The notes under the pieces are model-generated. The model made no database searches, was not told the DNA's origin, and worked only from the letters and a program-made list of their open reading frames with translations. The position numbers and the translations under genes were made by a program. A DNA stretch of 64,000 nucleotides, taken from positions 2,108,001 to 2,172,000 of the forward strand of contig CM119371.1 in the NCBI GenBank assembly GCA_051294905.1, written 5' to 3'. Position 1 is the first letter of the stretch, and each line of letters starts with the position of its first letter. This document shows positions 10,726 to 34,901 of this stretch, piece after piece. Source of the DNA: Botryllus schlosseri (taxonomy: Eukaryota).

Positions 10726-11036
10726 TTGTATTCTATTTTCCAGACAACTTGCAATGATGCCCAGCAGCTCGTCGTTGATACTGCAGCTGGTTAAATTCAA
10801 AGAACCAAGGCTTTGATTCCTTGCTGCAAGCGATCCAACGATGTGAGCTTCATCGCGACTCAATGAGATATGAGATGCGTCGATAACGGAAAGACCTTTC
10901 ATAAGATTGTCGTCACCCGATTCGTAGATTGCTGTATATAGTTCCATGTGAATGTATCCGTCGTATTCTTTAGTCGTCTGTAGTCGCGAATGAATCGATC
11001 GAACAAGAATATTTCGCTTCTGTGTTTGATCCGAGA
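10726..11036 (-). CDS. NLR exon after NACHT: helical domain and first LRRs
   Basis: Acceptor ttgacag|TC (phase 1, matches the NACHT donor), donor CAA|gtgagt. Contains LRR-like LSVIDASHISLS and LGSLNLTSCSINDELLGIIASCL. Confidence 0.88.
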
Positions 11037-11214
11037 CTGTCAAGCAATGCACAATGTCGTTGTATTCTTAATTATTCTTGCTTTACCGTTTACGTAACAA
11101 TTGAATAATTCACGCGACTGTGATGAGACAGGGTTCAAATGGAGTCAATGAACTTCAATGTCTACCGGTAGTTCACAATAACAATATCATTTCATGCGCA
11201 TCAATATCGCACGT

Positions 11215-11684: not shown

Positions 11685-13196
11685 CGTTGTGAAGATCGCT
11701 AGTAGATTTCATGTAAACGATGCCTGTAACGAATCTTCGAACCACGGACCATCGTTTCTCATGCAGATGTTGGCCATTAAAGCGAGAGAACATATCGAGC
11801 TTCATTTCCGAGATAAAACCAGCCGCCAGAAATTCTTGCATGCTTTGATGACAGAAGAAGAATGTGAAGTCGCCTTCCATCAAGTGACGGCTGAGGATGT
11901 TGTTGCCAGGCACTTTCGTCATCAAATCCTGCACTTCGTCCGCAGAAACTCCAAACTGATCCAAATCTGCCTTGAAGAATACGACTCGTCCGTCTTTCAT
12001 GCCTTCAAACGCCATTGCCTTCAATTTGTTGATAATCGAGAGGATTTCCTTACGGTTTCGGATATTTTCCACACTCTGTAAGACTAACATGATCCTGCTG
12101 TACAGTTCTGTCACGGTAGACGGGGGAGGTCTATCAGGATCAATTCCCATCACCACTGCTATCAAAATCAGGAAAACCGGGACCGATAAAAGTTGTAATA
12201 ATCGTGGTGACATGATTTCAATCTTTTTCCACAGACGCTGCCCGTTGTCACAGAGCAGAAAAGTAAACAGTTTATAAGCGTCTTGCAGTGTTAGACCAGT
12301 AAGTATGATGATATCTTGCGGACGTGCCTCCGTCGGTAACTCGGAGACTTTGAACTCACGTGACGCCACTATGATTTTGACATGGTGAAGGATTCTGCGT
12401 GATAGGATATTGTACATGATGATCGAGGAGCTCGCTCTTTCAAACGTTTTGATATTTCGTACTGTAGACTCCTCAAAGTCCCACTTCACTTGATCAAGCC
12501 CGTCAAAAATGATAATTGCTTCAGATTGATTCTCGAGCAGCCATTTGAAAGCTTCATCCTCTTCATACTCAGTTTCAAACAGACCGCCGAATAAAAACTT
12601 CGATGATTTTATACAGTTCTCTTGTTTCATGCTCTTCAATTCGACGTAATGTATCATTTTTTCCTTTGGTTTCGGTTCGGAAGAAGTTCCGAGAGCCCAT
12701 CGGAAAAATCTACGAAATATGTTATATTTCCTCAACGGAACAGCTTCATCCTTTTCCTTAGCGGAGGGAATTTCGAGCGCTTTCCGTGCAATTCTACGCA
12801 CAAGAGTAGTTTTGCCCGATCCTGCAGAGGCGACAATTGCGGTGTAACCAACTTTATTGTCATGAGGTAATTTCTCGGACTTTGACAGCCATTCCATTAT
12901 CTCTTCCATTGTTATCGGTTTACCGTCATTTTCGGATTGACGGTAAAACCCGACTTCCTCTATCAACTGACTTTGAAAAGCTTTCCTTCTAGATTCAAGA
13001 CCATATTCATCATCTGAAGATTTTTGTGCGCGACGGCCTTTGTAGTAGTCATCTACATTGAACTTTTTCATCTGCGGGAAAACTTCGAAGTCAGGTTCGT
13101 GAGGAAATTCATTCTTGAAATCTTCGCGGATGCCATTTGCCGTTTCTTGTCGAGTATGGTCGTTTATAACCTTTATCAATTTCCAGTAATCTACGC
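11685..13196 (-). CDS. NLR-type gene, NACHT NTPase exon (phase 1 to phase 1, 1512 nt)
   Basis: 500-aa ORF with Walker A VASAGSGKTT, Walker B IIIFDGLDQ, sensor-1 IIVASR, helical-domain LSVPVFL and winged-helix FFFCHQSMQEFLAA. Acceptor ttttctgcag|GC at 13196, donor G|gtgagt at 11685. Confidence 0.93.
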
Positions 13197-16100
13197 CTGC
13201 AGAAAAATAAAATTATTGTAACTTTTATCAAGTATTGCGCAAAATTTAAAGAAGTAGCTATAAAACTATTGCTGGTATGGTTCTCTTTCGGTTCAGTTTG
13301 TTAGCAATTTTAATCAGTTCAATACACCAAGAAATTGCAATACAATGAAAACATAGGAACGGGGCCTACAATACTCACCCGATAGAAAGGTGTCGAAACC
13401 AATTGGAGTAATCTTTGGAATCAGACACCCACCTCACCTTGGCCTAGGTCAGGGCTGGCCTACCCTTTCGGCTAAAGGGCCACATGCGATTTACTAAGCA
13501 TTGCCCAGGCCACTTGGATGTCGATGTTATTTTAGTCGTGTGATAACAGCGAACCGGATTAGGAAAAGGTAAAAAGGAATTATATTACTATAAACAACAA
13601 AAACACGTATGTCACGAAAATTCTGTGTAGGTACATGTCGTAGCCGCGCGAAGCGCGAATTTTCTCAAAAGGAATGAAACATAGGTCAATAAAATAATGT
13701 TAGTTGCATATATTGGGGTGGGTCGTTCCTGTATAGGCTACTGCTGGGCTCATTTGGCCAGGACATGATCAATCAGCACTTGGGCATATCAATATCGAAG
13801 GTTTGCGTGAACATGCGTCTATCACTTAGTGCAAAGTTTCATCGCCAACGATCTTTCCGCGAGCGCAGACGCCCATCAGTCGCACGTCGGACCACACATT
13901 CTCGCATAATTGCCGATATAGTTACACTCAATTCCGTAAATTAGGCGGATTTTGGATTTCCATGAGAAGGCAACAATACTAAAAGCAATAAATCACACGA
14001 AGTGCTGAAAAATATTAAGTCAAATAATCTAATAAATCTGAAATATTCTAGTTTATGGTCATATACGAAGATCTACGAAAATGTGGATGACCCCTGGCTA
14101 CGCCGACACGTCGGAACTGATATTTTAGTCATGAACGCCCCAATGTCCACGGTCAGGCTAATCATATTTTCGATTGCACTTGCAAGTTCACAATAAATTA
14201 CCTGGCGAATATATTTTTTAGATTATAAGTAATTTTAAGAATTGCCTCGCGGCCCTCAAAACCTTCTCGCGGGTCACGGGTTGGCCAGCCCTGGCCTAGG
14301 CGATGTAAAGAGGAGACATGTACACTGAATGAGAAGTAAAACTAGTACAGAAAAAAGGCAAGCGGAAAAATGGAGTGGCATTTCACTCAAAACGAGATCG
14401 ATAGTCAGTAACAGTATCAGTATCAGTTCTGCTCGATTTTCTCAACAATAGGCCTAACCTATGTGATGGATTAGCAGCATCCTAATGATATCTATGGCGC
14501 AACGGTTTGCAAACAAGAAGTTTAAAAACCACATCCAAAGACGACAGTGCCTGATCTCTCTCTATATATATATAATATATCGCTTGATTTATTCACTTTC
14601 GTTTCAATCTGACGTAATTCACTCCGGACGCTCAAGCGAGACCGCTGACAATAAAAATTTTAATGGGTTACCTTTTCAGGCTACTGATTTTGTTAAAGTC
14701 GTGAACACTGCGTTTTGCTGCAATGCCTTGGGTCAAGTTTGCATATCTAGGGGGTTTCAAATGCGTGGTACTTTACTTGTTTTATGGATGTGCATGGATT
14801 TTCGCGGAAAATTACTTCCCCGGGTTGCGTTACTTTCTTGCTGCGTACCGGCAAAACATCTAAGTTTCAGCGGTTATGCCAGGCCGTTCGTGAAATAAGA
14901 AAGTACCATATTGGACAGCTCTCCGCGCATGAGGGGACAGAGGAATGCTGTCAAGTAGTTTCAAACCGAAAGAACATAAAATGGTATACATGATTGATTG
15001 AATAACGAAGAAAGAAGCTAAAAAACAGACACCCTGCAAATCTTAAACTTTTCGAGTATCTAATACCCTAATATATCAATAAATTATAGATGCAAATCTT
15101 TACTGCAACTTTCCAAATGCAACAAAAACTTTCCATAGTAATAATTAAACTTTATTATGTAGAGAGTATAGGGGTTCTCAATCGTTGGGCCATGGCCCAA
15201 TGGTGGGCTACATGAGTAATGTGAGGTCTATTTGGAAAATTGGAAAATTAGTTAAAGTTTCGTTATAATTTTTATCTTTTTATTATCGAATTATACGTCG
15301 GCTATTTTCCCATACAAGTCGAAGATGGGAGGGGAAACAGCGGATTTTGTCCCCTGGATATGACAACCTACGGCCAAAAGCAACGGCAATAATTTCGATT
15401 ATATAATAACTAGAAGTTATTGCTGTACAAGCAACCAAGTATTCCGGCACTGTCATACGTCGTATGCCATTCAAAAGGATTAAAATTAAACTCGGACTGA
15501 AATGCATTTGACGTAGATTTATGGTATCTTTGATTGGTGGATCATCCGATAACTATCCACGAAAAACTCACATAACTCCGCTTATACTAGTCGGAATTGA
15601 GTCAAATATGTTTTGCATCGGTTGGCAGAAAAATTTGAATTTTTTTTTCTTGAATTTTTTCCAATAAATGAAAAATTTCAATTGGATTTGCGGAGGGAGT
15701 CCTATACTTGTTAGAATTGAACCAAATTTGGTGTGCAGCGTTTTTTTTAGGGTAGCCTGGCAATTTAATAAGTGAATGCCTGGAATCCGGAAAAAAGGGT
15801 ATTTTTGAACAGCCCTATTATGCAATTAACGGCATTGTATCTAAACGACAGTAGCCTAGATAGCAGACAAAGCTTACGAGGCCAGCGACACAACATTTCG
15901 AGCACGAGGCCTATTACAGATGCGATTACTGAGGCCAACGGTTATGTCGTGCGCACCAGGTCGGTTGGAGATGCGACTGATTACGCAAGGGATTGCATCT
16001 TCCGCACAGGGCCTGTTGAAGATGCGATTGTTAAGGCATGTCGCTGACGCGACGAATTAGCGAGGATTGCCGCACACGCGTGCAGCAATGTCGTGCTCAA

Positions 16101-16480
16101 TGATGTAGTTTCGCTCGCGTACAAACGGCAAACCAACTCAGCAGGAGACCGAGTGCTGTGCTGCTCGGTAATTAGCAACACGCTTCTCGCTAATTGGCAG
16201 CGCGTTACACTGATAACACGAATTACTGGGCACGATGGCTGAAAGTGATGCGTGATTGGAAACAAACACAAAGAAAGGTGTGATTTCAAGTTTTTATAGA
16301 GGGAGATTTTTACAAGGCTTGTTGTACCCATGTATAATAAGCACCCCCTATGTTAGGGTGAAAATCGGTAAAATTTTGCGCATCAAGTCAGTAAGCATAA
16401 AGAAATAATCATTGGTATAGCAGCTATTGATGATATCAGTATAGCTTACAGCAGCTGTGTAGATCCGTGACAATACCTGC

Positions 16481-17420
16481 CAGTGTAGGGATCAATTCAA
16501 TAGCTTCGAGTCACAAGTAATTTTGAGTCATTGCACATTTTGACTCGAGTCAAGTCAAGTCAAGCGATTTTCGAAGGTGGCTCGAGTCAAGTCACGTCAG
16601 TCGATTTTTGGAGGTGACTCGAGTCAAGTCAAGTGAGGTCACGAGTCAAATCACAATTCAAGTCAAGTTTCCTTTTCGATGTAGGATGCATGATTACGTT
16701 ATTGCATTTTGCTAGCTGTCTGAAATACAGATTGAGTGGTGATTGATTTTGAATTGAACCGATGAACGAATATAGAGTTAAATATACATGCAATAAGGCG
16801 CTGTATCGCTCACATATACGTATAACTGCTAAACTACGTAAGCAACTGCATAGGCTCAGTTTATAGTTTCCAGCCAAAATAGACAATAGAGAAACGAATT
16901 GATAAGATGCAATACATTACCTATTAGAATATGGATATGATACAATTCGAACCTGCGCCAATTGTTGTGGACTATATAAACTAGATTCGAATTCAATTTC
17001 ATTAAAATAAAAGCTTTGATTAGGGTAAGAACAGAAAACAGAAATAGGCATTTCGCTAATAAATTACTTCACTATACCATTTTACGACAACGTCAACTGT
17101 AAGCTTCGATCACCTCGTTTGCTGTCGATTTATTTTAGCAATTGAGGCTCAGTAAAACGCACAATCATTGAGTGATTGGTCGCTCTCACAGATTACACCA
17201 GCGTTTTGTGAACAATTCGAACATATGCAAGATACCGTGATTTTTGTCGACACCGATTACTCATTACTCGATGACTTGAAATTGACTCGTGAATTCTGCT
17301 CCGAGTCACGAGTCAATCCAGATTTTCGATACGCCGAGTCAAGTCAAGTCAGTCATTTTAGCAAATATCTCGATTCAAGACAAGTCCTACGAGAAAGGTG
17401 ACTCGAGCCATCGAACACTG
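16481..17420. mobile_element. hAT-type MITE with GACTCGAGTC subterminal repeats
   Basis: Ends CAGTGT/ACACTG, perfect TSD ATACCTGC. Confidence 0.88.
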
Positions 17421-17559
17421 ATACCTGCTCATCATGCCATATAATGTGGTCGTACGGATTCATAAAATTACACAACACATTCATTAAGCTGCGTTCGATT
17501 TATATTCAATAAATCCTTTGTCCAAATACCGGTGAATGCCTCAACAAATCGACTTTTAG

Positions 17560-18231
17560 GGCGGAGATAATGAAGTTGGATTAGCAATAAAGTCGATTAG
17601 CCCCTTCGTCAGGATTTATCAACCCAGGATTAAGGAAACCGTTTGATCGCAGCGCATAAAGTTAGTGTTAATCTCTTCATTTAACTAACTGGAACAAACT
17701 ATAGATTACTAGTTAGAAACTAGGTAGCCTACACTGCGTAACATTCCTACGCCCAATTATTTCCGGCAATTCCGAATGTCTCCTTCTCCTAGCCTGGGTA
17801 ATGGATTCACCATGTTAACATTATATCTATAGATTCACTAAACAATCAACGAATTATGAAGGCCTAACCACCATTGCAGCGCGATATCCGTTTCTTAGCT
17901 GTACCGAATAGGACACGACATTCATTTAGCGATGAAGGATTGTGGAATCTATATAGTTTTATAGTTTCTATAGTTTTTATAGTTTATATAGTTTCGCATT
18001 ATAATGCAACAGTTAACGCCACTTGATCGAAAACTCTGGAGACCTCGACTAACCATCGCGCGAAACCTTCTTCAACTTTATGCGACGCCATTAGAAGTAT
18101 TTGATCACACGATTAGCATTCTTCCGGATCTGCAAACTTTATCATCTCCGCCTAAAATGGGTCCCAATCAACAGTTTTCTTATCACAAGATTAGCATTCT
18201 CCCAGATCAGTCAACTTTATTATCTCCGCCC
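17560..18231. mobile_element. Putative MITE with GGCGGAGATAAT(A/G)AAGTTG ends (Sola-like?)
   Basis: About 22-bp inverted ends, right end duplicated at 78-nt spacing, approximate 4-bp TTAG flanks. Confidence 0.35.
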
Positions 18232-18968
18232 TTAGTGCGTTATAATAATTATGGGCTACTCGTCAGTGAATTCTTGGAAGTTACTGATATTGGTAATCCT
18301 CGATTAAACTCAAACGACGAACCAGATATCAGCATCACTCTATGTAGCTCAAAACCTGCGATGTTCCTTCTTCCTTCCCATTCTAATCCAGGCTACGAGT
18401 TTAAAATTTATGAGGCATATTTATCTATCGCCCTCTCCTGCCTCATATCACTATTCCCCCGAAACATTTTGTTATATCCTAGCTGTTGTTGAAAGAAGCT
18501 TCCGACCCCGGCGGTAGATCAGTCTCCTCCACTGCAAAACCATTTCTTCGTATATTTTTCTAAAGAAACTGCTATAAGCAGGTTGTTGCTGTTGTTGTTG
18601 CCGGTACGGTACTCTCGAGTTATTGCATTATGACGTAACTCAGTTCACCGGGGGTTTAACCTTAGGTCACGGAAAAGTGATGCGGCGACCGTTCATTGCG
18701 CATGAATCACTTAGTTCAGGGGCGGGCAACTTCTCCAGTCGGCGGGCCGGATATAGGAAAATTAAGTACTTGGCGGGCCGGATTGCGGAATCGACACATT
18801 ATTCGCCCATTTATCCAAATACACAATGAATAAATCGTATATAATGAATGTATTTTAACGACAGTAATGTCACTTCAAAGCAATTTCTCGCCGATAATGA
18901 CGAGAATATAATGTGGATTTGAGAACAGCATTATCATACAGGCGCCGCCATGTCTGCTTCTCTCTGAT

Positions 18969-19625
18969 CATAGTGTCCTATATGGTATGGGCACAAGAAA
19001 ATCTCACGACGCAGTGAAATTGGTCTACGTCAAACTTTCCATATGGTCAAAGGCAATTTGACGGTAGTTGTTGACCGACTTGCCGAGCATTAAATTTGAT
19101 AAAACGGGTATCAATCGAAAGCTACCGCGGTGCTGGTTGCGAAAAGATAAATTCTATTTTGCTCGAGGTTCTGGAACCCCCAAAATCAGCCTTGAATGTT
19201 GTATTGTAACGGAGTTTGGTATTGTGACGCAGCCATGCCGTCTGAGCAGCTCAGGAGCAAGCGCGCACGAGAGTAAGAGTGTGAATGCTCAATCGGTTGC
19301 TCAACAATGGCCAATACGATTGCGGTTAACTCTGCTCTTCACCTGCTCCCAGACGGCATGGTTGCGTCACAATACCAAACTCCGTTACAATGCAACATTC
19401 GAAGCTGATTTTGGGGGTTCCAGGACCACGAGCAGAATAGCATATATATTTTCGCAATTAGTACCGCGGCAGCTTTCGATTAATAACCGTTTTATCAATT
19501 TTAATGCTTGGCAAGCCGGTCAAAAATTACCACCAAATTGCCTTTGACCAAGGGGAAAGTGTGACGTAGACCTATTTCACTGAGCCGTGAGATTTGCTTG
19601 TGAACACACCTTATAGGACACTATG
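18969..19625. mobile_element. Near-palindromic MITE with about 285-bp arms and 2-bp TSD
   Basis: CATAGTGTCCTATA...TATAGGACACTATG, arms complementary along their length, flanked by AT/AT. Confidence 0.88.
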
Positions 19626-20731
19626 ATGTGCTCAATCAACTCACGGCGCAATCCCAAATTATTATTTCAAGGTGTTCAATAAGCCCGGTACCCCAAATTT
19701 ACCAATATAACAATTCATTAGGGCAGAGTAGGTGATGAGATAGCGTCGTTGTTCATCTGTGTGGACTATTTTATCTCGATATTAAATTCATGCGGACCAC
19801 GGCATCTACGAAATTTGAAAAGTGGCCCGCGACCCGTTTTGAGTTGGCGTCCCTGGCATAAGCGGTGTCTTACAAAAGCCTACATTGTGCCGTGCGGTTA
19901 CGGAATCAAAAATTATAAATTATAAATGACCATTGTAGTCTACCAACACCATGATTACCACAAAAGATATTAGGGTTGAGTACATCGTAAATGCCGATAA
20001 TCCAAGTCTTCTCGCTTCGACGAACTTACGTGCCAGCTCCACTCGCATGCTACGCATACAAATAACATACAGTCACTAAAATTTGAGGAAGTAAGCATAT
20101 AGCGGGGTATCTCGGCAGACTGTAGCCGCGGGCCACATTATCATATAAGACGGAAAACTGTCCGCGGGCCGGACAAAATCCCTTCGCGGGCCGGATCCGG
20201 CCCGAGGGCCGTATCTTGCCCACCCCTGACTTAGTTTGTATATCAAACTCTATGCCAGGGCCGGCAACCCGTGGCCCGCGAGGTTACTTCCGAAATTTAT
20301 AATATCATCCAAAATGGATTGCACAGATTGTGAACTTGCAAGGTCAACCAAAAATCTGATTATTCTGGCCGCAGCACTTGAGATGAAATATCTGAATAGC
20401 TGAAATATCAGTTCCGACGCATTGGCAGATCCATCAGCCAGTCACATATTGGTATATCTTCGTACACTACAATAAAGCAGAATAATTTGCGATAGATTTA
20501 TCAAAAGTAAAAATTTTCTACAAGCTTAGTAGCGCAACATGTTTTCACTCGATTTCTTGTTTTTAATATTGTTGCCCCTTTGTGAAAATGAAAGGACGCC
20601 TAATGTATCAGATTAAGTCTAACTATATTCGCGATTACGAGACAAAGTGTCGTTCAACGTATGCGGCCTTGCGTTTGCGCTCGCAGTAAGACCGTCGACT
20701 AGGAAACCTAGGCACAAAATGATTGACGCAT

Positions 20732-20933
20732 TTCCTTTACCCAAGTGTTGGAGGTTTAACTAGCCTCCTCCTCGCCACCTCATCCGCGTAAGCGGTGTCT
20801 TACAAAAAGCCTAGAAGTGGGCCGTGCTATAAGTCCTCAGTTACGGAATATAAATGAAGAATATCGGCCTGGTGTTGATTAGATGACCATAGTAGTCGAC
20901 AAACACCATGAATACCTCAAAACCAACCAACCA
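20732..20933 (+). mobile_element. 5'-truncated SINE copy with (CCAA)n tail
   Basis: TSD ATTGACGCAT at 20722-20731 and 20934-20943. The uninterrupted host repeat is at about 48825-49430. Confidence 0.88.
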
Positions 20934-21287
20934 ATTGACGCATGTTGGTCGCAGCTTTCGATATCGATATGTCCTGGCGCCGAATATCCCAGTCCTCGCA
21001 AATTTAGCCCAGCGAAATACAGCAGGCCCGCAATATAGTCAAGTGACAATATTATTGACCTATGAACTTCAAATAATTTTCGCGCATGGCGCGGCTAGTG
21101 GCCCGCGTATTAGTTTGTCAATCGAATGTGGCCCTTTGGCTGAAAAGGTTGGCCAGCCCTGCTCTATGCAGATCATTTGGGCGGAATAAGGAATCAAAAG
21201 GCGAAATTGAATGCTGCTACGCGGCACATACATCGGGTGCGACTGCCAATTGAACCACTTAATAGTTCGTCTGTCACCGATCATAGA

Positions 21288-22386
21288 CAGGGCATGACAT
21301 GGTATGGTATGGTATGGATTATGGAATGAAATTTCAGTATGGAATATGGAAGAGTGCAAGTATGGTATGGAATGGAAATTTCCTAATTATGGTATGGAAT
21401 GTTCTTTCCATACTTCCATACTTTTCGATACTTAAGCAGTTTTGCCGGAATCAAACATATATACAGCTTCAATTCAAACATATATATTATAGCTTGTCTT
21501 GGAGCGACGTTACGATATGGCGACCTGCAACACGCATTAAACTTCATGAAGTATGGTTGTCTATGATAAAAGAATAGACTCCCTAATCTTGGCTAACGAA
21601 TCTAATGTGTGGACCTGACCCACAAATTGGCGGGAAAAATTGACATTTGATCCGCTGCACCATAATTATTGTAGTGATGTAAATTTATATTCTAAGATAT
21701 TCTAATGCGGTGGTTTCGAACCGGTGAATAATTTTAGGGGTTCCTGGTCGGGTATAGACTCACTTGTAAAAAATATTTACCTTATTAACCTCATTTATTA
21801 AACGTTAGAACGATCGTATCTCTAATATTTATAGGCTTATTAGCTCATTTGCAATTCAGCGATTCGTAATTTCACTTATCAGTGTCTCCAATTAGTGGGA
21901 ATCGACTGGACGTGGACTGGTTGCATGCAAAATGGTGAGACTGAAATCACCCGATTCGTTATAATAAGAGTTCATATGTATATGAATATTGAATATGTAT
22001 TTAGGGAGATCGCGGACTGCCTAATTGATAGCATAGCCGGACTCGTGTGTAGGCCTATATATTATACGTTTCGTCTTCGATGATTAGGCAACATACATTG
22101 CTGACGACATATGATGATAAGGAACTGCGAATATCATTGGTGCATCAGCGCTGTTTAAATGGGTGTTTTCATCCAAAATAATTAGAATAATAACGCTGTA
22201 AAATTTCCACGTACCAAAAATAGAATATCACTTGAGAGGTTGGGCAAGTCGCGAAAGTATGTAAAAAGTATCGAATATGGTATGGAAGAATGTTGCTATG
22301 GTATGGAAAATTGTCAAGTATGGTATGGAACGATTGGGCGGGTATGGAGTATGGAAAATTCCCATTCCATACCATACCATGCCCTG
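21288..22386. mobile_element. hAT-type MITE with (ATGGT)n subterminal repeats
   Basis: TIR CAGGGCATG/CATGCCCTG, TSD ATCATAGA/ATCATATA. Confidence 0.82.
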
Positions 22387-22549
22387 ATCATATAAGAGTC
22401 AAGTCGAGTCATTTTCAATTCACCACCGAGTCAACTCTGATTCCAAGTCATTGTGTTGGCTTCTAATTTTCTAGTTATAGACTAGTTACACCCACTTTTT
22501 ATAACTCTGGTGATATGGAATAGTTTTCACTTATAATATAACCTAGGCC

Positions 22550-22910
22550 AGGTGCACCAACACGCGGCCCGCGGGCCGCATGCGGCTCGTCAGGTCATAT
22601 TTAGCGGCCCGCGACATGATTTGAGATTTCGGAAGAAAGCTAAAAAACATTTTGAAATGCAGAAATTAGCGTGCAATGGCCCAAACACTGCCAATACCGA
22701 GACGCTTAGAAAACGGGTTAGGGCAATGGCTGCGAAACTGAGGGTGCGACCGCCTATGGGGGCGTGAAAGCATGCTGAAGGGGTGCGGAGCTGCGTTCAA
22801 TTGAATTTTATTTCGCGCTTGGCGCGATTTGCTTCGATTTCATAGTTATAGTTATTACTTTTTAAGTATAATCCGGAATTCATATCATAGAATTCTCTCA
22901 TCAACATTCA
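22550..22910. repeat. Charlie-like (GGCCCGCG-rich) MITE, with a direct copy at about 25045-25360. Many related fragments (about 300, 19790, 20120, 32910, 33120, 34213, 53360, 54070)
   Basis: CAGGGG/CCCCTG-type ends, GGCCCGCGGGCC cores and direct sequence match between copies. Confidence 0.75.
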
Positions 22911-23004
22911 TAACCTTCACTGTAAATCTAAAAGGTGGAGATTTCCTCCATTAGAAGTGGTTCACCATTTTGACCATTTCTGGTGGAATGCAACTCCACC
23001 CCCC

Positions 23005-23125
23005 ATCATGGTGGAAATACTTTCCACCCTATATGGGGCCATACCCTCCTCCCTATATGAGGATTACCTTCCACCCTATATGGAGGAATACCCTCTACCC
23101 TATATGGGGGACATACCTTCCACCC
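23005..23125. repeat. About 23-bp tandem minisatellite (TCCACCCTATATGG core, 4 units)
   Basis: Repeated CCCTATATG units are directly visible. Confidence 0.8.
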
Positions 23126-23249
23126 CAACCTATCTGTCAGCTGCCACACATCTTTGCTTTATGCAATACTGCAGAATACAAATCCAATTAAAACATACAA
23201 GCATGGCATTTCATACGTTTTATTATGCGTATTCAAACAGTCATTACTA

Positions 23250-23491
23250 TAGGGTTACCATATTACAGAATCGAAAAAGGAGGACAATTTTACCAATTCA
23301 GGAAAGTTAGTTGATCAAGACTGACAGCCGATTTTGCTATTTTTTGCTGGAAAACTTTTGGTGTTAAATGAAAGCGACGAGTCCAAAATTACCATATTTT
23401 TACTTAAATTTAGTCGTGTTGACTAAAATAAAAAGTCGGCACTGACAATCGACTTCGAATGACCCGCTTGAGCCTCCGTATGGTAACCCTA
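23250..23491. mobile_element. MITE with TAGGGTTACCATA ends
   Basis: TIR TAGGGTTACCATA/TATGGTAACCCTA, degenerate 8-bp TSD CATTACTA/CATACCTA. Another end at about 52027. Confidence 0.72.
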
Positions 23492-23539
23492 CATACCTAT
23501 GATGACAGTTCCATTGTTTATGGCAACATATTAGTAGCC

Positions 23540-26500
23540 CTCACAACAAGATTTGTCAGCTCTTTAGCAGGTATGACGAAAGGCACGTGAGAGTGTGCTT
23601 GATATTCTTCTGAAATTGTTCAATATCCAATGAGCTGCGATCAGAAGAGCAAGTGTTTCATCAAAACTTTCAATGTTTTTTGAGAAGACGATTCCATCCA
23701 AGTGCAGGCTCCATTGCGAATTGTAGACCATCGTTGGATATGGAGAGATAGAAACCTGAAAGATATATTATATTACTATGAAATCTTCGGACTTCAGATC
23801 ATTATGATATCGAGATAGGCTTAGCACATAGGACAATTTATATTACCACTGCTCAAGTTATAAACATGAATTTGTGTCACAAAATGTTGCTCATTTGATT
23901 TATGCTTTTAAAAATATCTTGTCACCAGTCTGTCTGCTGCAATGAAGTATATTTCAATCTCATGAGCCCCAATCCATTACTTAAGCTATGCGCGACGCCT
24001 GTACCAGGTCTACTGAAGCTTGCCACTTTCTATCGCTAGAAGTTGTAATGGCATGTAAGAAATATGGATTGACTTGATTTTGAAACACTGGTTTACCATT
24101 ATGGTCATTTACAACAGGCCGGTGTTCCTTATTTTTTAATCCGTGTTTGCTGACTTGTAGCACGGCTCACTTCTAGGATTCTTGTAAGACACCGACGAGG
24201 CGAGGTAGAAACCAGACTTGTACAAACTACTGAATTTTCAAAATCAGTAACTAGAACTACAACTACTGAATTTTCAAAATCACTAACTTGAGCTACAACT
24301 ACCAAATTTTCATTATCAGCAACTAACTACAACTACTGAATTTTCAAAATCCGCAACTAGAACTACAACCACTGAATTTTTAAAATCAGCAATTAGAACT
24401 ACAACCAATCGAAAAAACGTTAGCTAGCTGACCATCGACTAACCAACTGTTTAGTTTTAACAATGTATATTATACACCATCTATCTACGAACAGCTTACC
24501 TCTCCAATATGAAGAAAATTGTCGTATCCTTCTCCAAAAATGGTTGGTATACCAGCACGCCAATCCAACACTCCATCACCTATAAAGCAGACACAGGTTA
24601 TTAGAACTATCGATGATCACTTCTAGCATTCCAATATTTATTTTGAACGCGTGTAATTTTCGGAAATGAATCCGACGGTAACTGGCTGGTACGAGACTAT
24701 GTTATTGTGAAAGCCACGATTATTGGTGCGGCGCAAGTCAAACAAGCTTCTACAATTGCATCTCAACGGCAGAAGTTAGAGAGCCACTGCACTTGAATTA
24801 ATTCGAAAAAAGTTGTTAGCGGAAAATTTGCAATGCCACACAATTTCATGAAATAATATTCTCACCTAGTAATCCTTGTATAGTCTCGGGAACTTTAGGC
24901 CACTTCATTTTGGCCTGAGCTATATTGTACCGGCTCTGTGTTGTGCACTTCCCATCAAGGTTTCAGCCTCTTTCAACATCTTAATATACATAAGATATGA
25001 TACACCCGTGGCAAAGACAATTTATACTATAGACCAAATGTCACCGCGGCCCGCGACTTGATTTGAGATTTCGGAAGAAAGCTAAGAAAACATTTTAAAA
25101 TGCTGAAATTGGCGTGTAATGGCCGAAACACTGACAAGACCGAGGCGCATAGAAAACAGGTTAGGGCAATGGTTCTGAAAGTGGGGGCGCGTCCTCTAGT
25201 GGGGGCTTTAAAGCATTTGAAGGGGCGCGGAGCTGCGGTCAACTGAATTTTTTTTCGCGCACTGCGCGATTTACCTCGATTTCATAGCTATAGTTATTGC
25301 TCTGTGTATAGTCCCGAATTCATATTATAGAATTCTCTCATCAACATTCATAACCATCCACGCCGTTAAACTATCCGATTGCTAACAGTATGGGTACATT
25401 TTGTGATATGACGATAAGGGCGGGCGAAATATTTCAGTGTCATAAAGGTTTGAGAACCACTGGCTTAGGGTTTCCCCACAAGATCAGCGTTCCCAGGTAA
25501 CGTGCACAGCTCAGAGTTCAAAATAAAATGAAATTGATGAGAGTGATGTTTTGTTGTATTTTTATTCCTTCATTAAAATATTACTTCTTTTGTGGTCACT
25601 ATGTCCATCGCCTATGTTAGGTAGCACAGGGTTGTACTGACGTAGAGTTTTAAGTCGTGGTTGCCTACTTTATATCGATTTTGGATTCATGCGGCCCGCG
25701 GCCGCTACGAAATTTGATAAGTGGCCCGCGACCCGTTTTGAGTTGGCGACCCCTGCTATAGACTATTGTACATCCTGAAAAATTAGAGTTCAACTAGCTC
25801 ATCTTAAAACCAGGATATAAATTAACTGGACTTACAACCCTGGCTCTTTTGCATCTAGAGCTGCTGGCTCCTTCTTCCTCAATCACATTCTTTCGTTTTG
25901 TACCATGCTTCTGCTCCATCTGATTCACCAATTCAGCTTCCAAATGTCTTCGATAGTCCTTGAACTTCTGCCTCAAGGCAATATGCCACGAGCCCTGAAG
26001 AAATTGCAAATATTGTTGGACTCAACTCTGCAGAGAGTACTATTACTAAAAGCAAGGAAAAACCTCTAAACAGTCCACAAAGTCTAAAAATCGGCATTTT
26101 TTCAACAATGGCAGCGCCACGACACAATGAACATAACAATGGGTGGTTTGAGGTGGTTCTATTGCATTGACTTGATAAGCGATTTTTGGGTGACTCGACT
26201 TGAATCTAGTCTTTTTTTTTCAAATATGTTAAATGACTCGACTCGAATCAATTTTTCATTGCATCTACGAAGAATAGTTATTTCGAGTACGAGTCCTGAT
26301 ACTTGGCAAAATAGGGCCAGAAACTGTTAAGACTGAGGAAAATTACTGTATTCTGGATGCGAGCCAACTACACAAGCAGAATTGATAAAATGTGGATTGA
26401 GCTATACATGTCATTTTAAGGGTGTGTATCATACATGGGGGCGCACTATATTCGGAAAATTACGGTATTAGTCCGGAATTCACCGGTAACGGGCAAGGAC

Positions 26501-27330
26501 AGTATACTATGGATATCTGGCGTCCACATAGCGTATTATGACTATGACCATTGCCCACGACTGAAGTTACATGCAGCTTACCTAGCTGGAATTTTCTTCA
26601 TTATTGTCTTTCAAAACTGGAGAGTTTTTTTAATAATGCCAAGCATACTTCTCGATACTGATGCGCAGTGGGGTACCTGTTAGATAGATCCGCATATAGT
26701 TACCTGATATCTATATAAACTAACGAAATGCATGCACGAGTTTCAAAACAAAATAGGATGGATGAATTGAATGGAATTATACTTACAAAGTATATCGCAA
26801 AGGATCTTGAAAGATAATTGTCTTGATCTCTTCTCTCAGTCTTTATGGAATTACAATATTGCCAGCGCTCCCATGCACCAAGTATTGACGAAAAGCTGGG
26901 ATGTCGTAGACCACAGGCCATAGTTGTTATGAACGTGAAAGTGATGATTCAACTGGATCATCCGTCATAATAGATTCAGATAAAACCAGTAATGATTCAA
27001 CTGAATCATCCATTACATTACGTTCAGATGAATCCACAGTTAGGGAGTCGCTAGTGATGCTGCTGTCGCAAACGCTTGGTACATTTTCTAGGAAAATTAC
27101 GTATAGAGGTGAAGAAATTGATAATTGAAGCCAAGCCTAAACTTACCGGTAACAGGAACTCTAATCCGATCATTGCCTTTTACATCAGCATCAGACAGAA
27201 ATCAGTAAACTCCTTATCATAACACTCAATATTCAAGAATTCCGGCGCCAAATCAAATTTTAGTGCAGCAGATGATGGTATATCTTCTATTGTGCACGCA
27301 GTAATGATCTTGTTGTCGGTATTGAATGTA
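23540..27330 (-). pseudogene. Decayed multi-exon SAMD3-like gene nested in the NLR intron (possibly a transposon accessory gene)
   Basis: Exons about 27147-27330 (IECYDKEFTDF), 25836-25994 (GSWHIALRQKFKDYRR), 24866-24979 (AKMKWPKVP), 24500-24579 (GIPTIFGEGYDNF) and 23540-23755 (PYPTMV...LDG...FDETLALLIAAHWILN). GT/AG sites are present and phases match across the last three exons. Frameshifts in at least three exons. Family assignment is from motif recall. Confidence 0.55.
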
Positions 27331-30047
27331 ACTAAGTCTCATAATTATTTAGGACTGAAATCACAAGTTACAATTAGATATCAGAAGAGTTCCTTTCATT
27401 CAAACAAGATCTATCCTTGCAACAGTTATAATGAAAATCCAAATTCAAAATATGCAGCTACTGATGGTAAAACTAGAGCCAGTTTGAATACCGTACCCAA
27501 TAGCTCTATCTATGGTATGCATGAATATGAGAATGTAATCATCCTAGCTAATTTCTTGCATTATAATCACCCGTTGGCTTACTTGAATTACCTTCCCACC
27601 AAACAAGATATCATCTCGTCTCTCAGGTACTGCTAACTGCTTATGGCAATGGCAAGTTCATTGAATTTTCAGTCACGAGCGATACCGGTACTTCATACGA
27701 AATCGATTAAGCAGATGACATCACTTATGAACTAAAATCAACGATAATCATAATTGTGATTAACTCAAAATCAATGAATATAGATATATTTTTCTGTCGA
27801 CTCACTGAGTGACTGACTGACGACGCAGAGCGCGCATCCCCGTATATTCGAAATAGCAAATCGCCAGAGTCCCGGATGCTGCCGGTCACGGTTCATTGGT
27901 GAGAATATTGGCGATAATAATAAATACCTTAAAGGTTTTGGATATGCTACGGTCGTGCAGGATCTTGAAGTAATTATCACAATCCATTAATGGTATTCAG
28001 ACATTTTCAAATTTAATAATCCCTCTACTGGCTTAACCACTTGGAAAAAAACTGTTCAATATTTTATCAATATTCCAAAATGCATTCATTCATGTCTGAT
28101 GACGTTATTAACTATAAGCCAGTATCAACTGTTATGTTTTAATTGGGCAATACGACAGTTTGCAAACAGTCATTTCTGATTTCCACCATGTCAATAATTG
28201 TTTTCCACCAAATATGGTAGACTATTCATTCCCCCCTCTTTCCACCCTCTAAATTCCTCCATATGTGGTGGAGTTACGGTGGATAAAGGGAAGGAATGTA
28301 CCTTCATCCATTTTTCTACCATTTTTTCCACCTTTTAGATTTACAGTGTTCCATGCCATCAAACTACCCGTTCAAAACGCTAGCATTGTGGATGCATTTT
28401 GTGATATGACGATAAGGGGGCGCGAAATTTTTCAGTATCATAAAGGCGGGGTGTCTAAAAAGGTTTGAGAACCACTGGCTTAGGGCTTATACCTACAAGA
28501 TTAAGCATTAAGTGGGGATGGTCTTTCAACTAGTTAGGTATATCGCTAGCCCCAAAAAGCGTTTCCAGGTATCGTACACAGCTCGGAGTTCAAAATAAAA
28601 TCAAACTGATGACAGTGATCCTTTGTTGTATTTTTATTCATGTAATAAAATATTACTTTTTTGTGGTCACTATACCCATCGCCTATGTTAGGTAGCACAG
28701 CGTTGTACTGACGTAGAGTTTTGAAACGTGGTTGCCCACTTTATATCGATATTGAATTAATGTGCCGCTACGAAATTCGAAAAGTGGCCCGCGACCCGTA
28801 TTGAGTTGGCCACCCCTGGCTTAGGCCTACTAATTTTCCTCACTTTTAGCGGTTTGGGGCAGACATGCACAACTGAATATTTAGTTAGTTGATGGTAATC
28901 TAACTAACTGTTTTTGGGTAGTTTTAGTTCTGGTTCTAATAGCTGAATCCGAAAATTGAATAGTAGTAGTTCTAGTTTCGGATTTTGAAAATTGAGTAAC
29001 TCTAGCTTTAGTTCTAGTTGCAGATTTTGAGTTTTAATTCTAGTTATAAAAAAAAAACACGTGTGGTCGTTTTGGGTGAATTTCGATGTCGGGGTTATGT
29101 TGGATGATGTTTGTGCATGTGCACTGTGCAGCCATTGCTTTTTCAGGGCCATCACTGCCAACAGTGGCTTAGCCAGCGAGTGGCTTTTTTGCGTCGGAAT
29201 CGCTCACATTTCAAACTCGAAACACCGTTATTTTGAAATGTCGATAAAATGTCCGATATTTCCGATGAAATAAAAATCTATTTGATTACAAGGAGAATGA
29301 AATCAAGATCTGTACAGTTCTTAAGTTGACTTGGGAGCCCGTCTTCACAGATAGGCAACTATTATTTTTAGTATGATACGCAGAAAATACTTTGACGAGC
29401 TGAATCAAAAGATTGCACTACAATCTGCGTGCGATAATTTTTAATAACTAACTGGTAAGAGCTAGAAGCTGAATCCAGATTATTCGTAAATCAGTATGAA
29501 GTAGGGTCTTTGGGACGGATTTTATTTTTCTGCGAGGTATTCTCCGCAATTCCCGCGTATAGTTCATATTTGGCCTGTGGGCCATAAAACGCCCAGGTCC
29601 GCCCTACGCTAATATACAAGCGTTCAGCGAGCCCTTAATTTCAGTGAGTCACAAAACGAAAATACCATATGCGCGGTAATCTGTAGGACTACCAGTAAAG
29701 TTAGTCAGGCAGACTTGTACAACTTACCCATTTATTTAGTTGTTGGTTGGTCAACTAACTAACAGTTTTCAGTAGTTTTAGTTCTAGTTCTAGTTGCTGC
29801 TTTTGAAAATTGAGTAGTTTTGGTTCTCGTTCTAGCTGCGGATTGTAAAACTTGACTAGTTATAGATGTAGTGCCAGTTGCGCTGTTTCGAAACCAGGCA
29901 GTGTGCACAAGTTTGGTTTCTATAGTTGCATTTTCGAGTAACACTATACCAATAGACGAAATTCCATCAGTGCGGGTATACTTTACTAATCTTCGAAATT
30001 ACAATGCCATGTCGGTCTTGGCCGTCTGAGTCTCGAATCATATGACT

Positions 30048-31291
30048 CAGATTTGTACAAACTACTGGATTTTCAAAAAGTGCAACTATAACTAGAACTG
30101 GAACTACAACTAATCAATTTTTAAAACGCGCAACTACAACTATAACTAGAACGTACCGATATTCAAAATCCGCAATACAACTAGAACTAGAACTACAGTC
30201 AATTTTCCAAATCCGCAACTACAACTAGAACTACAACGACTGAATTTTCAAAATCTACAACCAAAACTAGAACCAGAACTAGAACTTTTGGCACGCAGGC
30301 CAGGGGTAGCCGATCCCGGGCGTATTCGATACTCCCAATAAAGTCGATATAACATGGGTTAATTTATGTCGGGATTATGACATAAGCATGCATTCAATCG
30401 GCTGAAGCTCAGAGAAGACGAATTCGGAAAACCTGTCAGCGAAGTTATCGAAACAACAGGACGATTTTATCAATAAGTTACACACCGCTCTGGATATAGA
30501 CCAAGCAGTAACATCCAATACATTTCGGTGTCTTTTAGAAAGATGTGTCTATCGATTGGTGTGATTAGAAGGAGTTAACTATGTTTCTTGTCTACCATTG
30601 TTTCGAATATTTACGTGGAATAAATATTATATTTGTACTTTGACTGTAAAATCTCAATTGACTAACATATAGTGATAAATCCTATCAGAAGCCTATGTTA
30701 ACCAAGTAATTCATTGCTTTCAATTTATAAATTATTAGAAATACAATCACTGCCGAATACTATGTATACTATAGTGCAAACTTTTGACTTAGCTAGCCGA
30801 TGTATTTCATGTCTGTCATTATCAGAAAATAGTTAGTTGCCTATCTGTGACGTAGGGGTTACTAAGTCATCAAAGGTTTGGAACCTTATAGAACTGGATT
30901 TCATTCTCCTAGTCAACACATTATTATACTTTATCGGAAATATAGGACATTGAATCGACATGTCAAAATAAACGGGGTTTCGAGTTTGAAATGGGAGAGA
31001 TTCCTGCCTCGAAAAGTCACCCGCTGTTCGCAGTGATGGCTCTGAGCGAGCAATGGCTGCACAAACATCATTCAAAAGAACACCGGCATGTCAATTCGCC
31101 TAAAACAACGACACGTTTTTTCTAGTTGTTCGGTAACTAGTCAATTCGCCTAAAACAACGACACGTGTTTTGTAGTTGTTCGGCAACTAGTCAATTTTCA
31201 AAATCCGCAACTAGAACTAGACTACAACTACCCAAAAAATCGTTAGTTAGTTGACCATCAACTAACCAAATGTTTAGTTTGTACAAGTCTG
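30048..31291. mobile_element. hAT-type element (CAGA(C/T)TTGTACAAAC ends, AACTAG/AACTAC repeats) nested in a GACTCGAGTC MITE
   Basis: Perfect TSD ATATGACT at 30040-30047 and 31292-31299, and the flanks rejoin into MITE sequence. Family fragments also at about 24215, 28905, 29710, 46380, 60850 and 62030. Confidence 0.85.
31090..31189. repeat. 50-bp tandem duplication
   Basis: GTCAATTCGCCTAAAACAACGACACG... x2. Confidence 0.9.
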
Positions 31292-31587
31292 ATATGACTT
31301 GGTTCGAGTCATGCGTAATGACTCGAGTCTAAGTCGAGTCAATACACAGCTTGGCTCGAGCATAGTCGAGTAATTTCCGTATTTCAAGAAAATGAATCAG
31401 GTCAAGTCTACTATTCAGAAAATCGCGAATCGAGTAGATACAGCGACTCGAGTCATTACAGCTTTGCCCCAGATATACACGACCTATGTTGACCATGTGG
31501 GGGAGCTGAATTACGGGAAATTTGACGATAATGACCATTGATTTAATAAAACAGGATGCACTACATAGCACCAGATAAAACACCCAC

Positions 31588-31737
31588 GTTGGTCAGGTGA
31601 AATTGCTTGAATTCGATAATCCATATTGTAATTGATGGTGGTCTTGCTCCCGTGAATTTGATCTCCTGCCACAACGTTGACCGAGCTGTTTATGATCCGT
31701 TGATTGATGTTTTCTCCTTCCGCCAAACTTGCAGATC
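31588..31737 (-). CDS. Symmetric phase-1 exon (150 nt) with RHIM-like motif, candidate N-terminal exon of the NLR
   Basis: gtgtctcag|GA ... C|gtgggt, open frame SASLAEGENINQRIINSSVNVVAGDQIHGSKTTINYNMDYRIQAISPDQ. Splices in frame to the NACHT exon. Confidence 0.55.
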
Positions 31738-33471
31738 CTGAGACACGCGAGAATATTACGTCCGATATTCCGATGCATACTCATTAGTAACCATCAAGTT
31801 ACGATCATGGAAACTTAACAGAGTTTTATACTAATATCAGATTATGCAGCACCCGAATGTTATTATATATTTGAATAATTTAAATATATGGTTCTTGGTA
31901 CAGAACTTGAATAGCTTTCAATTCATCCATTGTAGTATAATATTTATTGAACTCAAAGACTTTTATGGTGCCTCTTTTCAAAAGTTAACGGCACATCAAA
32001 AAGATTCAAACAGATTTAAAAGTAAAACCAAAAAGGCTAGGTATGACGCAGCAATCAAAATCACAGACCATGAGATTCTCAAACACAATATCGGTAGTTG
32101 ATTAAATAGTGAGGACATGGAGATAATCCAAACATTGCTCTGATGATATCGTACACGCGTCAGAACAGTAGCGAGATTTCATAGGCTGGTAGACCTCAAT
32201 AACAAATTTGTCAAAACTATAGAGATGAAAGTCGGTTATCCTGCTTCTTAGAACATGATTGAAATTTAAATCTGTGAGCAGCAATCTGTTCATATATTTA
32301 GTAATATCAATTTTGGTTCAGTTCCAGGACATAAAATGCTATCATAACCAGATTAGCTTCAAACACGCTTCTACTATGTGTAGATAAATAATAAATGTCC
32401 TAATAATACGCATACAGAGAACGAATCTACGTAGGACACGCACTGAAATAATTAAAACTGGAGTGACCAATCTGAAATCACACCCATGATCCGAATTATG
32501 TCAATCTCGCCCGCCCCCTTTGATGGTAAAATATTTCGTGCTCCCTTTATCGTCCTATCACAAAGCGCAACCAGGAAGCTAGCAAACCTAACTGATAGTT
32601 TGATGGCATGGAAGGTTATGACTGTGTATGTGAGTTTTTAAATCTGAAATTCAGAGTGAATACAAAGCAATAGTTACGAATGGGTTATAAATCGCGGGTG
32701 GGGGGGGGGGGGGTCGACATTTTTTTTAGTTGAGCTCAGCTTTGCGCTCCGTTTAGATGCTGTCACGCCCCAAGTGGGGTTCGCCCCCCAGTTTGAAAGC
32801 CCCTGCCTGGGAATTATCACGTCGAAATATACCAAGAAAGGGTTTAATCAGTTCCCTGCGTTAGTTCGATTTGAAGTACGCATTTAATCAATACTTTTAA
32901 TAGATTCCTTTAGACTCTCGCGGGCCGCACAGACCGGTGTGGAGGGCCGCATGCGCCCATGGGCCGTAGTTTGCCCACCCCCGGTATAGTCCAACACTTT
33001 TAAATGTAACAAAGATCTGTCTCGCGCAATGATAGTGAACATATTGTCATTAATTATGGTGTTGTGCGCAGGCGAGATTTTCACTGAAATGTTTACCAAT
33101 CGCGAAGCATTTGCTTAGAGCAGGGGTTCTCAACTTCCCTCGTATAACGGGCCGCATTTTCACACTAAAAGACGCTGCGGGCCGCAGAACATTATCACCA
33201 TGTATTTGTAGGCTACTATTAAATTTATGCCTATTTATCAGTCTTATTCGGGCATTTAGTACATTTCTATGTATTCTAAAGCTTTGATGGAGAGCGTTCG
33301 TAAGTTTGCAGTTGCTGTTTTTTGTGAGAATATTGATCATCAAGTGGCGCAAGTAAATCCCTTCATGGAGCGTACATTCCATCCGTTACCATGTCGGTAT
33401 AGTATATGCACCCTTCAAACCCTTCCACCACCAGAAAACCAAACTCTCTGTGTCAATGCGTGAGCGAGCAA

Positions 33472-33728
33472 TTATAAAATTACGGTGACTTTTTCGTTAC
33501 TGAGGTCATTATCACTTTGAGCTCTCAGTGATATGAGAAGAATTGAGACGTTAGGGGTCATTTCTGAGCAAATCAAGCAACTTTTCTCTTTTCCTTCCAT
33601 GGCAGGAGCCCTACACCAAAAGTTACAGAAGTCAGCTTTGTCAAATTGATGTCCTGGTCCCCTTCCCACGTTTGCCCCGTTAGCATTTCCTCTGTAAATA
33701 TGCCCATGCCCACTCTGATAAAAATCAC
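33472..33728 (-). CDS. Candidate exon with G/N/H-rich low-complexity motif
   Basis: attatccag|GT phase-1 acceptor, frame open to TAA at 33472: GDFYQSGHGHIYRGNANGANVGRGPGHQF... Confidence 0.4.
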
Positions 33729-33972
33729 CTGGATAATTAGCTATGCAATGTGTGTGCATTGTGTGCATCGATGGATAGTTCCAATGCTAGGCTAAAGTAG
33801 TCTACGCGGCAACGTGCGATAAAAGATTGACTGAGATCGCTGTTACTCTTCTGGTGAGTGTTGAATCAGACAACTGTAGCTTCGAAATTTGTCAGGTAAT
33901 GTAGGACTTGCTGCTAAGTTCCGGAAACAGCGAATATTCGCACAGTGCGTTAAAGTTTTATTGAAGTCATAC

Positions 33973-34410
33973 CTTCTATAGCAGATTCTTGGGTTTAGCG
34001 ATATTCCAAGCAGTTTTGACCAATGCGTCCGTCACGTCGTCGGCAATTTTTAAAATGATTCGAAATATGGATTGCTGGGCTTGAAACCATGCTAGCAACG
34101 TTTGATATGTATAACTCCAGATGAAACTATCGTGCTATCATTTCAGGGTTCTAGGCTTTCTTACAACAACCGTTCTTCGACAAATGTGACACATCGGTTT
34201 TCCATAACAATACAGGGCCAGTAGTGATTATATCGAAAGAGGCCGCGGGCCGCAAAAGAATCGTCTGCGGGCCGCATGCGGCCCGCGGGCCGCGGGTTGA
34301 GAACCCCTGGCTTAGAGTAATCTTCATAACAATCTATTTTGGCAGCTAATTTGCATTAGCGTGCGAGCTCTATACGTGGTCATTTGCGCAGGATTTTGAG
34401 CGAATCAATT
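33973..34410 (-). pseudogene. Decayed death-domain-like exon interrupted by a small MITE
   Basis: Acceptor ttccag at 34411 (112-nt intron after the MAEGG exon) and donor G|gtatga at 33973. Fragment YTYQTLLAWFQAQQ...DDVTDALVKTAWNIA resembles death-domain helices 5-6. Several stops and frameshifts, with a MITE at about 34213-34310. Confidence 0.35.
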
Positions 34411-34522
34411 CTGGAATATGCTGCTTTACACGGTCAAGCAATGAATGGATAACTTTAATATTATATCATATGTATACTATCGAGGAAATAAATGGATCTC
34501 AAATATTCTAGTAAATACTTAC

Positions 34523-34595
34523 TGCTTCCTTCGGGTAATAATAGTGAAGGCACATCAGCGACACCAGAAATCTTTGCTTCTCCCCCTTCCGCCAT
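34523..34595 (-). CDS. Candidate first coding exon MAEGGEAKISGVADVPSLLLPEGS
   Basis: atcATGG start context, MAEGG N-terminus, perfect phase-1 donor A|gtaagt. Confidence 0.6.
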
Positions 34596-34901
34596 GATAA
34601 CGATCAAGTAATGTTAAATATTCGCTATATCACAAAATACTAAAAATGCAAAAGATGGTAAATAGCCTACACTATTTGAGAAATTTTATTTGAGTACCGC
34701 GGTGAGACTAAAGGATTCGATTCGAGTCCTCGTATTCAGGAGCTGTGAATAACATTCACAACTTTGGAAAATACCATATAACCATATGAGCAAAAGAGAT
34801 TGATGAAATAAAATACACCAATTATCCATGAGGCGAATAGCTTCATATTTGGCAGGTCTATGCGGTATTGTAAGGGGTCGTTCACACTTCCATTTGTGTG
34901 C

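Follow-up and report, generated by a model that had tools for sequence, protein, structure and literature searches.

The window, the whole 64-kb stretch of DNA that was analysed, harbors on its minus strand an NLR gene in which a start exon and a short cassette exon precede an exon encoding a NACHT NTPase. The gene models described here are readings of the DNA, and the public protein sets searched contain no annotated full-length protein with the cassette-encoded peptide. The features of the locus, in the direction of transcription, are the following (a caret marks an exon boundary).

34523..34595, minus strand: start exon, 24 codons MAEGGEAKISGVADVPSLLLPEGS plus 1 base; ATG at 34595, donor A^gtaagt, phase 1, from reading of the DNA
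31738..34522, minus strand: intron 1, 2,785 nt, enlarged by repeats, with a very high depth of repeat-derived contigs
31588..31737, minus strand: motif ("M") cassette exon, 150 nt, phase 1-1, 49 full codons, from reading of the DNA and a profile match
31652..31735, minus strand: conserved 28-residue core SASLAEGENINQRIINSSVNVVAGDQIH, from alignment A1, column counts, and dN/dS
13197..31587, minus strand: intron 2, 18,391 nt; the ~2 kb nearest the NACHT exon resembles paralogue introns and the remainder is a repeat-rich insertion
11685..13196, minus strand: NACHT exon, 1,512 nt, phase 1-1, with a pre-NACHT region, the P-loop GSGKTT, the NACHT domain, and a winged helix
10651..11067, minus strand: open piece with an LRR-like stretch LGSLNLTSCSINDELLGIIASCLEN, no Pfam match, and no repeat elsewhere in the window

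The motif exon is bounded on the minus strand by the acceptor ...tctcag^GATCTGCAAG..., ends in ...GACCAAC / CCTGACCAAC, and is followed by the donor ^gtgggtg. Its reading frame is flanked by 2 leading bases and 1 trailing base, and the in-frame translation (31589-31735, minus strand) is SASLAEGENINQRIINSSVNVVAGDQIHGSKTTINYNMDYRIQAISPDQ, which contains IINSSVNVVAGDQIHGSKTTINY; the conserved part of this peptide is hereafter called the tag. The original prediction of a 150-nt, phase 1-1 exon at 31588-31737 agrees with the AG/GT splice sites, the phases, and the recurrence of the exon in the genome. The same prediction had the exon spliced in frame to a start exon and to a NACHT exon. At the DNA level the phases fit, and an arginine codon is formed at each junction (A+GA on the start-exon side; C+GA on the NACHT side, followed by VDYWKL...). 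The NACHT exon itself is delimited by an acceptor, ...gcag^GA, at 13196 and by the end AACG^gtgagt at 11685.

The assignment of the gene to the NLRs, also part of the original prediction, is borne out by Pfam, in which the NACHT exon matches PF05729 NACHT (E 1e-13) and PF17779 NOD2_WH (E 6e-5), as is characteristic of a NACHT NTPase with a P-loop and a winged helix. About 115 residues of this exon lie ahead of the P-loop and include a conserved EPxFxVYPQM segment. The start exon and the motif exon together supply the whole N-terminus ahead of the NACHT exon, about 75 residues. The nearest named relatives of the NACHT exon are tunicate NLRs (Clavelina, Styela) with 26-29% identity; they are too short or too distant to be informative about the N-terminus. 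The LRR-like open piece at 10651..11067 is probably part of a downstream sensor exon.

Intron 1 contains a 104-aa open piece (33475-33786, minus strand) with a G/N-rich stretch, YRGNANGANVGRGPGHQF, which was considered as a possible amyloid partner. Since it has no Pfam match and is highly repeated in public runs, it looks like an intronic repeat. The "MAEGG" unit considered along with it is exon 1 of this NLR. Two adjacent plus-strand ORFs of 404 and 226 aa (42525-44429) have no relation to the NLR gene; by eye, they appear to be the C-terminal part of a reverse transcriptase and the RNase H from a retrotransposon of the non-LTR type.

The motif exon is one of many. A six-frame search of the 495-Mb genome identifies at least 150 similar exons, and a profile built from the paralogous exons has a single match in the 64-kb window, namely the motif exon itself (E 3e-30; the next match is at E 2). 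At 30 fetched loci, the paralogous peptides are likewise flanked by a ..ag^GA acceptor and a ..CAA C^gtgagt-type donor. The 5′ surroundings are shared as well: at least 20 paralogues keep, ahead of their motif exon, a MAEGGE... start exon together with ~300 nt of DNA upstream of it, and the start exon is usually 0.2-1.4 kb from the motif exon.

Conservation among paralogues had been set beforehand as a test of the motif. Across 27 copies, the 28-codon core is kept with pS 0.47, pN 0.15, and a dN/dS of 0.23 at a dS of 0.73, which indicates purifying selection on the protein sequence of the tag. The family consensus is S-A-x-L-A-E-G-E-N-(V/I)-N-Q-x-(I/F)-x-N-S-x-V-N-V-V-A-G-D-Q-I, in which L4 and D25 never vary, while A2, A5, S17, V19, N20, Q26, and I27 are each present in more than 90% of the copies. 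The rest of the motif exon is a variable linker. It is highly probable, in our judgment, that the motif exon is a real N-terminal module of an NLR family.

Animal NLRs are thought to signal via folded death-fold, TIR, or BIR domains. In the gene described here, the 20 largest open pieces on the minus strand of the two introns have no Pfam match to death, CARD, PYD, or DED families, and the AlphaFold (AF2) model of residues 1-200 of the NACHT exon (mean pLDDT 65) lacks a six-helix death fold; in the model, the pre-NACHT residues form one helix, an extended stretch, and a long helix. The statement in the original prediction that no intact CARD, PYD, or DD exon intervenes is thus upheld for both the introns and the pre-NACHT region. 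The family profile also detects no second motif exon closer to the NACHT exon in the window.

The direct succession of the two exons is best seen in a paralogue (L023), in which the motif and NACHT exons are in phase and separated by 430 bp that contain no open frame. The join, from a phase-1 donor to the acceptor tttcag^GC, gives ...ADQ-S-IKFRKL.... Since no open frame is accommodated in this intron, splicing in this family joins the motif exon to the NACHT exon directly. NACHT exons are as abundant in the genome as motif exons, with 85 scored candidates out of 215. For 37 of the 61 motif exons with E<=1e-3, one of the listed NACHT exons is located in the 45 kb downstream on the same strand, at a median distance of 10.9 kb; in the other arrangements, a NACHT exon is found upstream of 2 and on the opposite strand of 1. 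This survey of the exons that follow motif exons is a sample and not a census. Two "orphan" motif exons (L034 and L035) have no recognisable exon in the 10 kb downstream. The tag stands where other NLRs carry their signalling domain, replacing the death fold in well over a hundred NLR genes.

The tag is also found ahead of genes other than the closest relatives of the window's NLR. In three diverged NACHT clades (L040, L042, and L047), it is located 3-5 kb upstream of NACHT exons that match Pfam NACHT at E 1e-11 to 1e-15; compared with the window's gene, the tag core is 50-61% identical and the NACHT exons 21-26%. At least six tag exons are followed, 1.1-5 kb downstream on the same strand, by single-exon protein-kinase ORFs with Pkinase E values of 1e-38 to 1e-43. 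The two kinases compared with the PDB (L043 and L051) have IRE1 kinase-endoribonucleases as their closest PDB matches (E 1e-26 to 1e-29, the next family being at 1e-16 to 1e-22). At all three kinase loci read for this purpose, the tag-to-kinase join is in frame, with a phase-1 donor and a ..ag^GT acceptor whose two leading bases are positioned just inside the ORF. No KEN ribonuclease domain was found behind the tag-bearing kinases. The KEN exons present at one locus (L052) have their own kinase C-lobe and thus look like a separate gene.

A third association is positional. Contig C8 has a cluster of four tag exons, all located 4.3-8.4 kb upstream of the four best-matching NHL-repeat exons of the genome, and one gene of this cluster also has a MAE... 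start exon. Across NLR, kinase, and NHL genes, the identity of the core is 46-68%; the peptide is a conserved motif and not filler. A tag common to several gene families is as expected of a signalling or adaptor motif.

Several further observations concern these families. At one NHL locus (L039:1597-5755; G000 C8:3918996-3923154), what appears by eye to be the gag and pol of a Gypsy-type LTR retrotransposon, the latter with protease, RT, RNase H, and integrase, lies between the tag exon and the NHL exons. IRE1-type single-exon kinase ORFs of ~300 aa are numerous: a first look yields 212 candidates, and E is below 1e-20 for at least 53; they are strongly clustered on contig C3 (16.1-17.6 Mb and 20.0-21.7 Mb), and an upstream tag is detectable in some only. 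A separate region of the same contig (C3:13.05-13.79 Mb) has ~10 weak KEN (Ribonuc_2-5A) matches in ORFs mostly of 590-650 aa, which may represent an expanded RNase-L/IRE1-like family, distinct from the genuine IRE1, which is located at C16:2.82 Mb. At two loci (L026:1501-2252 and L048:39-1008), two diverged motif exons occur in tandem, ~350-600 bp apart, upstream of one gene; such an arrangement would mean either a double tag or mutually exclusive exons.

The window's own copy has a mosaic ancestry. Its start-exon region (34400-34800) is 87% alike at the DNA level to that of one paralogue (L003), and its motif exon is 82% alike at the protein level to the L003 subfamily. The NACHT exon together with 2 kb of adjoining intron (13144-17402) is 84-91% alike to a different set of genes, including L037 and L038, whose own motif exon is ~4 kb upstream and of a different subtype (58% identical). 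The NACHT-proximal ~2 kb of intron 2 is 84% alike to these ~4-kb paralogue introns. Because the 5′ module and the NACHT part are each closest to a different subfamily, the window's gene looks recombinant within the NLR array, and unequal crossing-over or gene conversion among the array's genes is the suggested origin.

Such an origin bears on whether the gene is intact. The motif and NACHT exons could be remnants of two genes that were joined by recombination, leaving a copy that is inactive or spliced otherwise. The split affinities of the two halves would agree with this, as would introns swollen by repeats and the read data, in which the start exon has zero coverage and no joints occur between 31000 and 35000, the depth there being derived mostly from repeats. 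These data are a small sample, consisting of one bulk RNA run, of which ~6% was read, and three runs of guessed RNA type; a few reads and contigs do lie on the motif exon at 95-99% likeness, with mismatches in some reads, and one of the contigs is a paralogue (NYIMNSGIEA). Against a defunct copy, all three exons have open frames, their splice signals are intact and their phases match, the window offers a sole motif exon and a sole NACHT exon, introns of 10-40 kb occur in other family members, and NLR expression is usually low, which a reading of ~6% of the one run confirmed as RNA could miss. We consider an inactive or differently spliced copy unlikely, and we infer that the window's copy is expressed and spliced across the 18.4-kb intron.

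The original prediction proposed the peptide as a candidate RHIM-like motif with a loose match, and this is the part that the sequence does not support. The RHIM core tetrad is (I/V)-Q-(I/V/L/C)-G. In the equivalent columns of the tag, V (25/27), N (25/27), V (24/27), and V (23/27) are followed by A and G; a Q-x-G at these positions occurs in none of the 27 paralogues, which have a nearly invariant VNVV-A-G instead. The Pfam RHIM family, PF12721, matches 0 of the 27 paralogous peptides at E<=10. Searched against all six frames of the genome, it scores at most 17.7 bits, where its cut-off is 20, and none of the matches falls on a motif exon. The family profile retrieves no RIPK or RHIM chain from the PDB; the best match, a Rossmann-type segment of the MthK RCK domain at E 0.25, is an unrelated chance match. 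The proposed scan for other amyloid motifs, run over Pfam-A with the 27 copies (E<=10), likewise returns no amyloid-motif family (HRAM/HET-s, sigma, PP/SesB), the sole match being a stray DHOR, and the ESM Atlas has no match above noise.

A diverged RHIM, homologous to those of RIPK1, RIPK3, ZBP1, and TRIF as well as to the fungal PP and bacterial BASS3 motifs, would have the receptor signal by amyloid templating. The features that invite this reading are a loose resemblance of IINSS-VNVV-AGD to RIPK1 and RIPK3 in the alignment of the original prediction, the occurrence of the tag on both sensors and kinases, an N/Q/V/I/G-rich composition, and an AF2 monomer model in which the tag alone is unstructured, with no secondary structure. 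The N-terminal position on an NLR also has a precedent in the RHIM-NACHT proteins of amphioxus, e.g., BF82280, described by Kajava et al. (PMC4262963). However, the same study reports that tunicates appear to lack RHIMs, with which the negative genome-wide PF12721 search agrees. Together with the failure of any paralogue to restore (I/V)Q(I/V)G and of the Pfam and PDB searches to retrieve a RHIM, this makes homology to RHIMs very unlikely.

What the peptide does instead has to be read from its distribution. The motif exon is a coding cassette of an NLR family that is very large and lineage-restricted, in a tunicate-like animal, and this cassette has also been placed before diverged NACHT clades, before IRE1/RNase-L-type kinase genes, and, by position, before NHL-repeat genes. 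We propose that the tag is a homotypic recruitment or oligomerisation module. Upon oligomerisation of the NACHT modules, the tags would cluster and capture other tag-bearing proteins, e.g., the kinases. A peptide of 28 residues that is rich in N, Q, V, I, G, and S, unstructured, under selection, encoded by an exon of symmetric phase, and N-terminal on both sensors and kinases behaves like such a module. The tag probably links NLR, kinase, and NHL-repeat proteins, and, by analogy, we lean toward tag-tag recruitment that is lineage-specific and RHIM- or CARD-like in its logic.

The main competitor is a peptide that binds something other than itself. The tag could serve as a docking or regulatory peptide for a common third party, such as a chaperone, an E3 ligase or degron reader, or SUMO (via V-x-V-V), or it could be an auto-inhibitory strand that folds onto its own protein body, its spread reflecting shared regulation. 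Short linear motifs are, like the tag in its monomer model, unstructured in isolation, and VNVV flanked by S/D presumably fits a generic SUMO-interaction pattern. The whole 5′ module (upstream DNA, start exon, and tag exon) is common to the paralogues, as co-regulation would predict, and this shared promoter, start exon, and tag exon could have spread by recombination for the sake of regulation; the dN/dS of the core, however, argues for constraint at the protein level. Moreover, conservation over ~28 contiguous residues exceeds that of a typical docking motif, and the position of the tag and the sensor and kinase families that carry it mirror known homotypic adaptor modules. A role in docking or regulation is, on balance, improbable, and homotypic recruitment is preferred.

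The nature of the contact within a homotypic assembly is a separate matter. Cross-beta, amyloid-like stacking of the tag is plausible from its N/Q/V/I/G-rich composition, and an amyloid-like tag-tag contact is put forward tentatively, as a possibility that we would not expect to prevail. Equally tentative, and in our estimate rather unlikely, is the fuller version, in which the tag would be an independently evolved functional-amyloid motif unrelated to the RHIM, through which well over a hundred NLRs of several NACHT clades would nucleate IRE1/RNase-L-type kinases and perhaps NHL-repeat proteins. The tag peptide is short enough for synthesis, which makes the amyloid question directly testable.

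Three known systems offer points of comparison. The RHIM (RIPK1, RIPK3, ZBP1, and TRIF; the Drosophila cRHIM; the amphioxus RHIM-NACHT proteins) is similarly a short non-globular motif in place of a death fold, similarly N/Q/V/I/G-rich, and similarly found at the N-terminus of NACHT proteins of an invertebrate chordate. It is also distributed over sensors and kinases, as the tag is over NACHT exons and in-frame IRE1-type kinase ORFs, a likeness of function and not of homology. In contrast to the RHIM, the tag has neither a RHIM profile nor a PDB match, its core is VNVV-A-G-D-Q-I and not (I/V)Q(I/V)G, its ~28 conserved residues are encoded on a cassette exon of their own, and its kinases are of the IRE1 type and not RIP kinases.

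The amyloid motifs of fungal and bacterial NLRs (HET-s/NWD2 HRAM, sigma, PP, and BASS) are motifs of 20-40 residues at the extreme N-terminus of the NLR, which lacks an effector domain. The same motif recurs on non-NLR proteins, and the NLR repertoires are expanded and fast-evolving, both as seen here. Unlike the adjacent receptor-effector pairs of these systems, the partners of the tag (the kinase and NHL genes) are located elsewhere in the genome; fungal effectors carry the motif C-terminally, whereas the tag is N-terminal on the kinases; no amyloid-motif family in Pfam-A matches the tag; and the host is an animal. In the CARD-based pairing of NOD1/NOD2 with RIPK2, an NLR and a protein kinase share a terminal homotypic module, and receptor oligomerisation nucleates assembly of the kinase, as is proposed here. 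However, the CARD is a folded six-helix domain of ~90 residues, whereas the tag is a 28-residue peptide that is unstructured in its model and has no death fold.

To our knowledge, NLR signalling through short motifs is found in fungi and bacteria and, among animals, only with the RHIM. N-terminal short-motif signalling in fungal and bacterial NLRs and the RHIM-NACHT arrangement of amphioxus are thus already known; the motif family itself, its tunicate-like host, and its partners, IRE1-type kinases and NHL-repeat genes, are new, and no description of the tag was found in the literature searched. A huge NLR repertoire equipped with a 28-residue peptide points to an adaptor module that has not been described before and, for an orphan NLR family, to concrete candidates for its downstream partners. 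It also illustrates that an exon of symmetric phase can carry an interaction tag between immune gene families. If the functional-amyloid reading is true, a prion-like immune relay of the NWD2/HET-S type would exist in an animal lineage reported to be without RHIMs.

Exon-sized ORFs with the motif are also present in other public assemblies. Among 1.84 billion representative proteins, the profile retrieves no full-length gene model with the tag; it matches 11 short ORFs that resemble exons and, spuriously, one bacterial MucBP. A Logan contig from another public run has a NACHT ORF with 49% identity to the window's NACHT and, 1.8 kb upstream of this ORF, a G/N-rich tag variant, ...SATLVDSGGGSVSVTNYGVINIVAGGNGG (L053:126-305). 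This variant is missed by the A1 profile, and the motif family is therefore broader than alignment A1.
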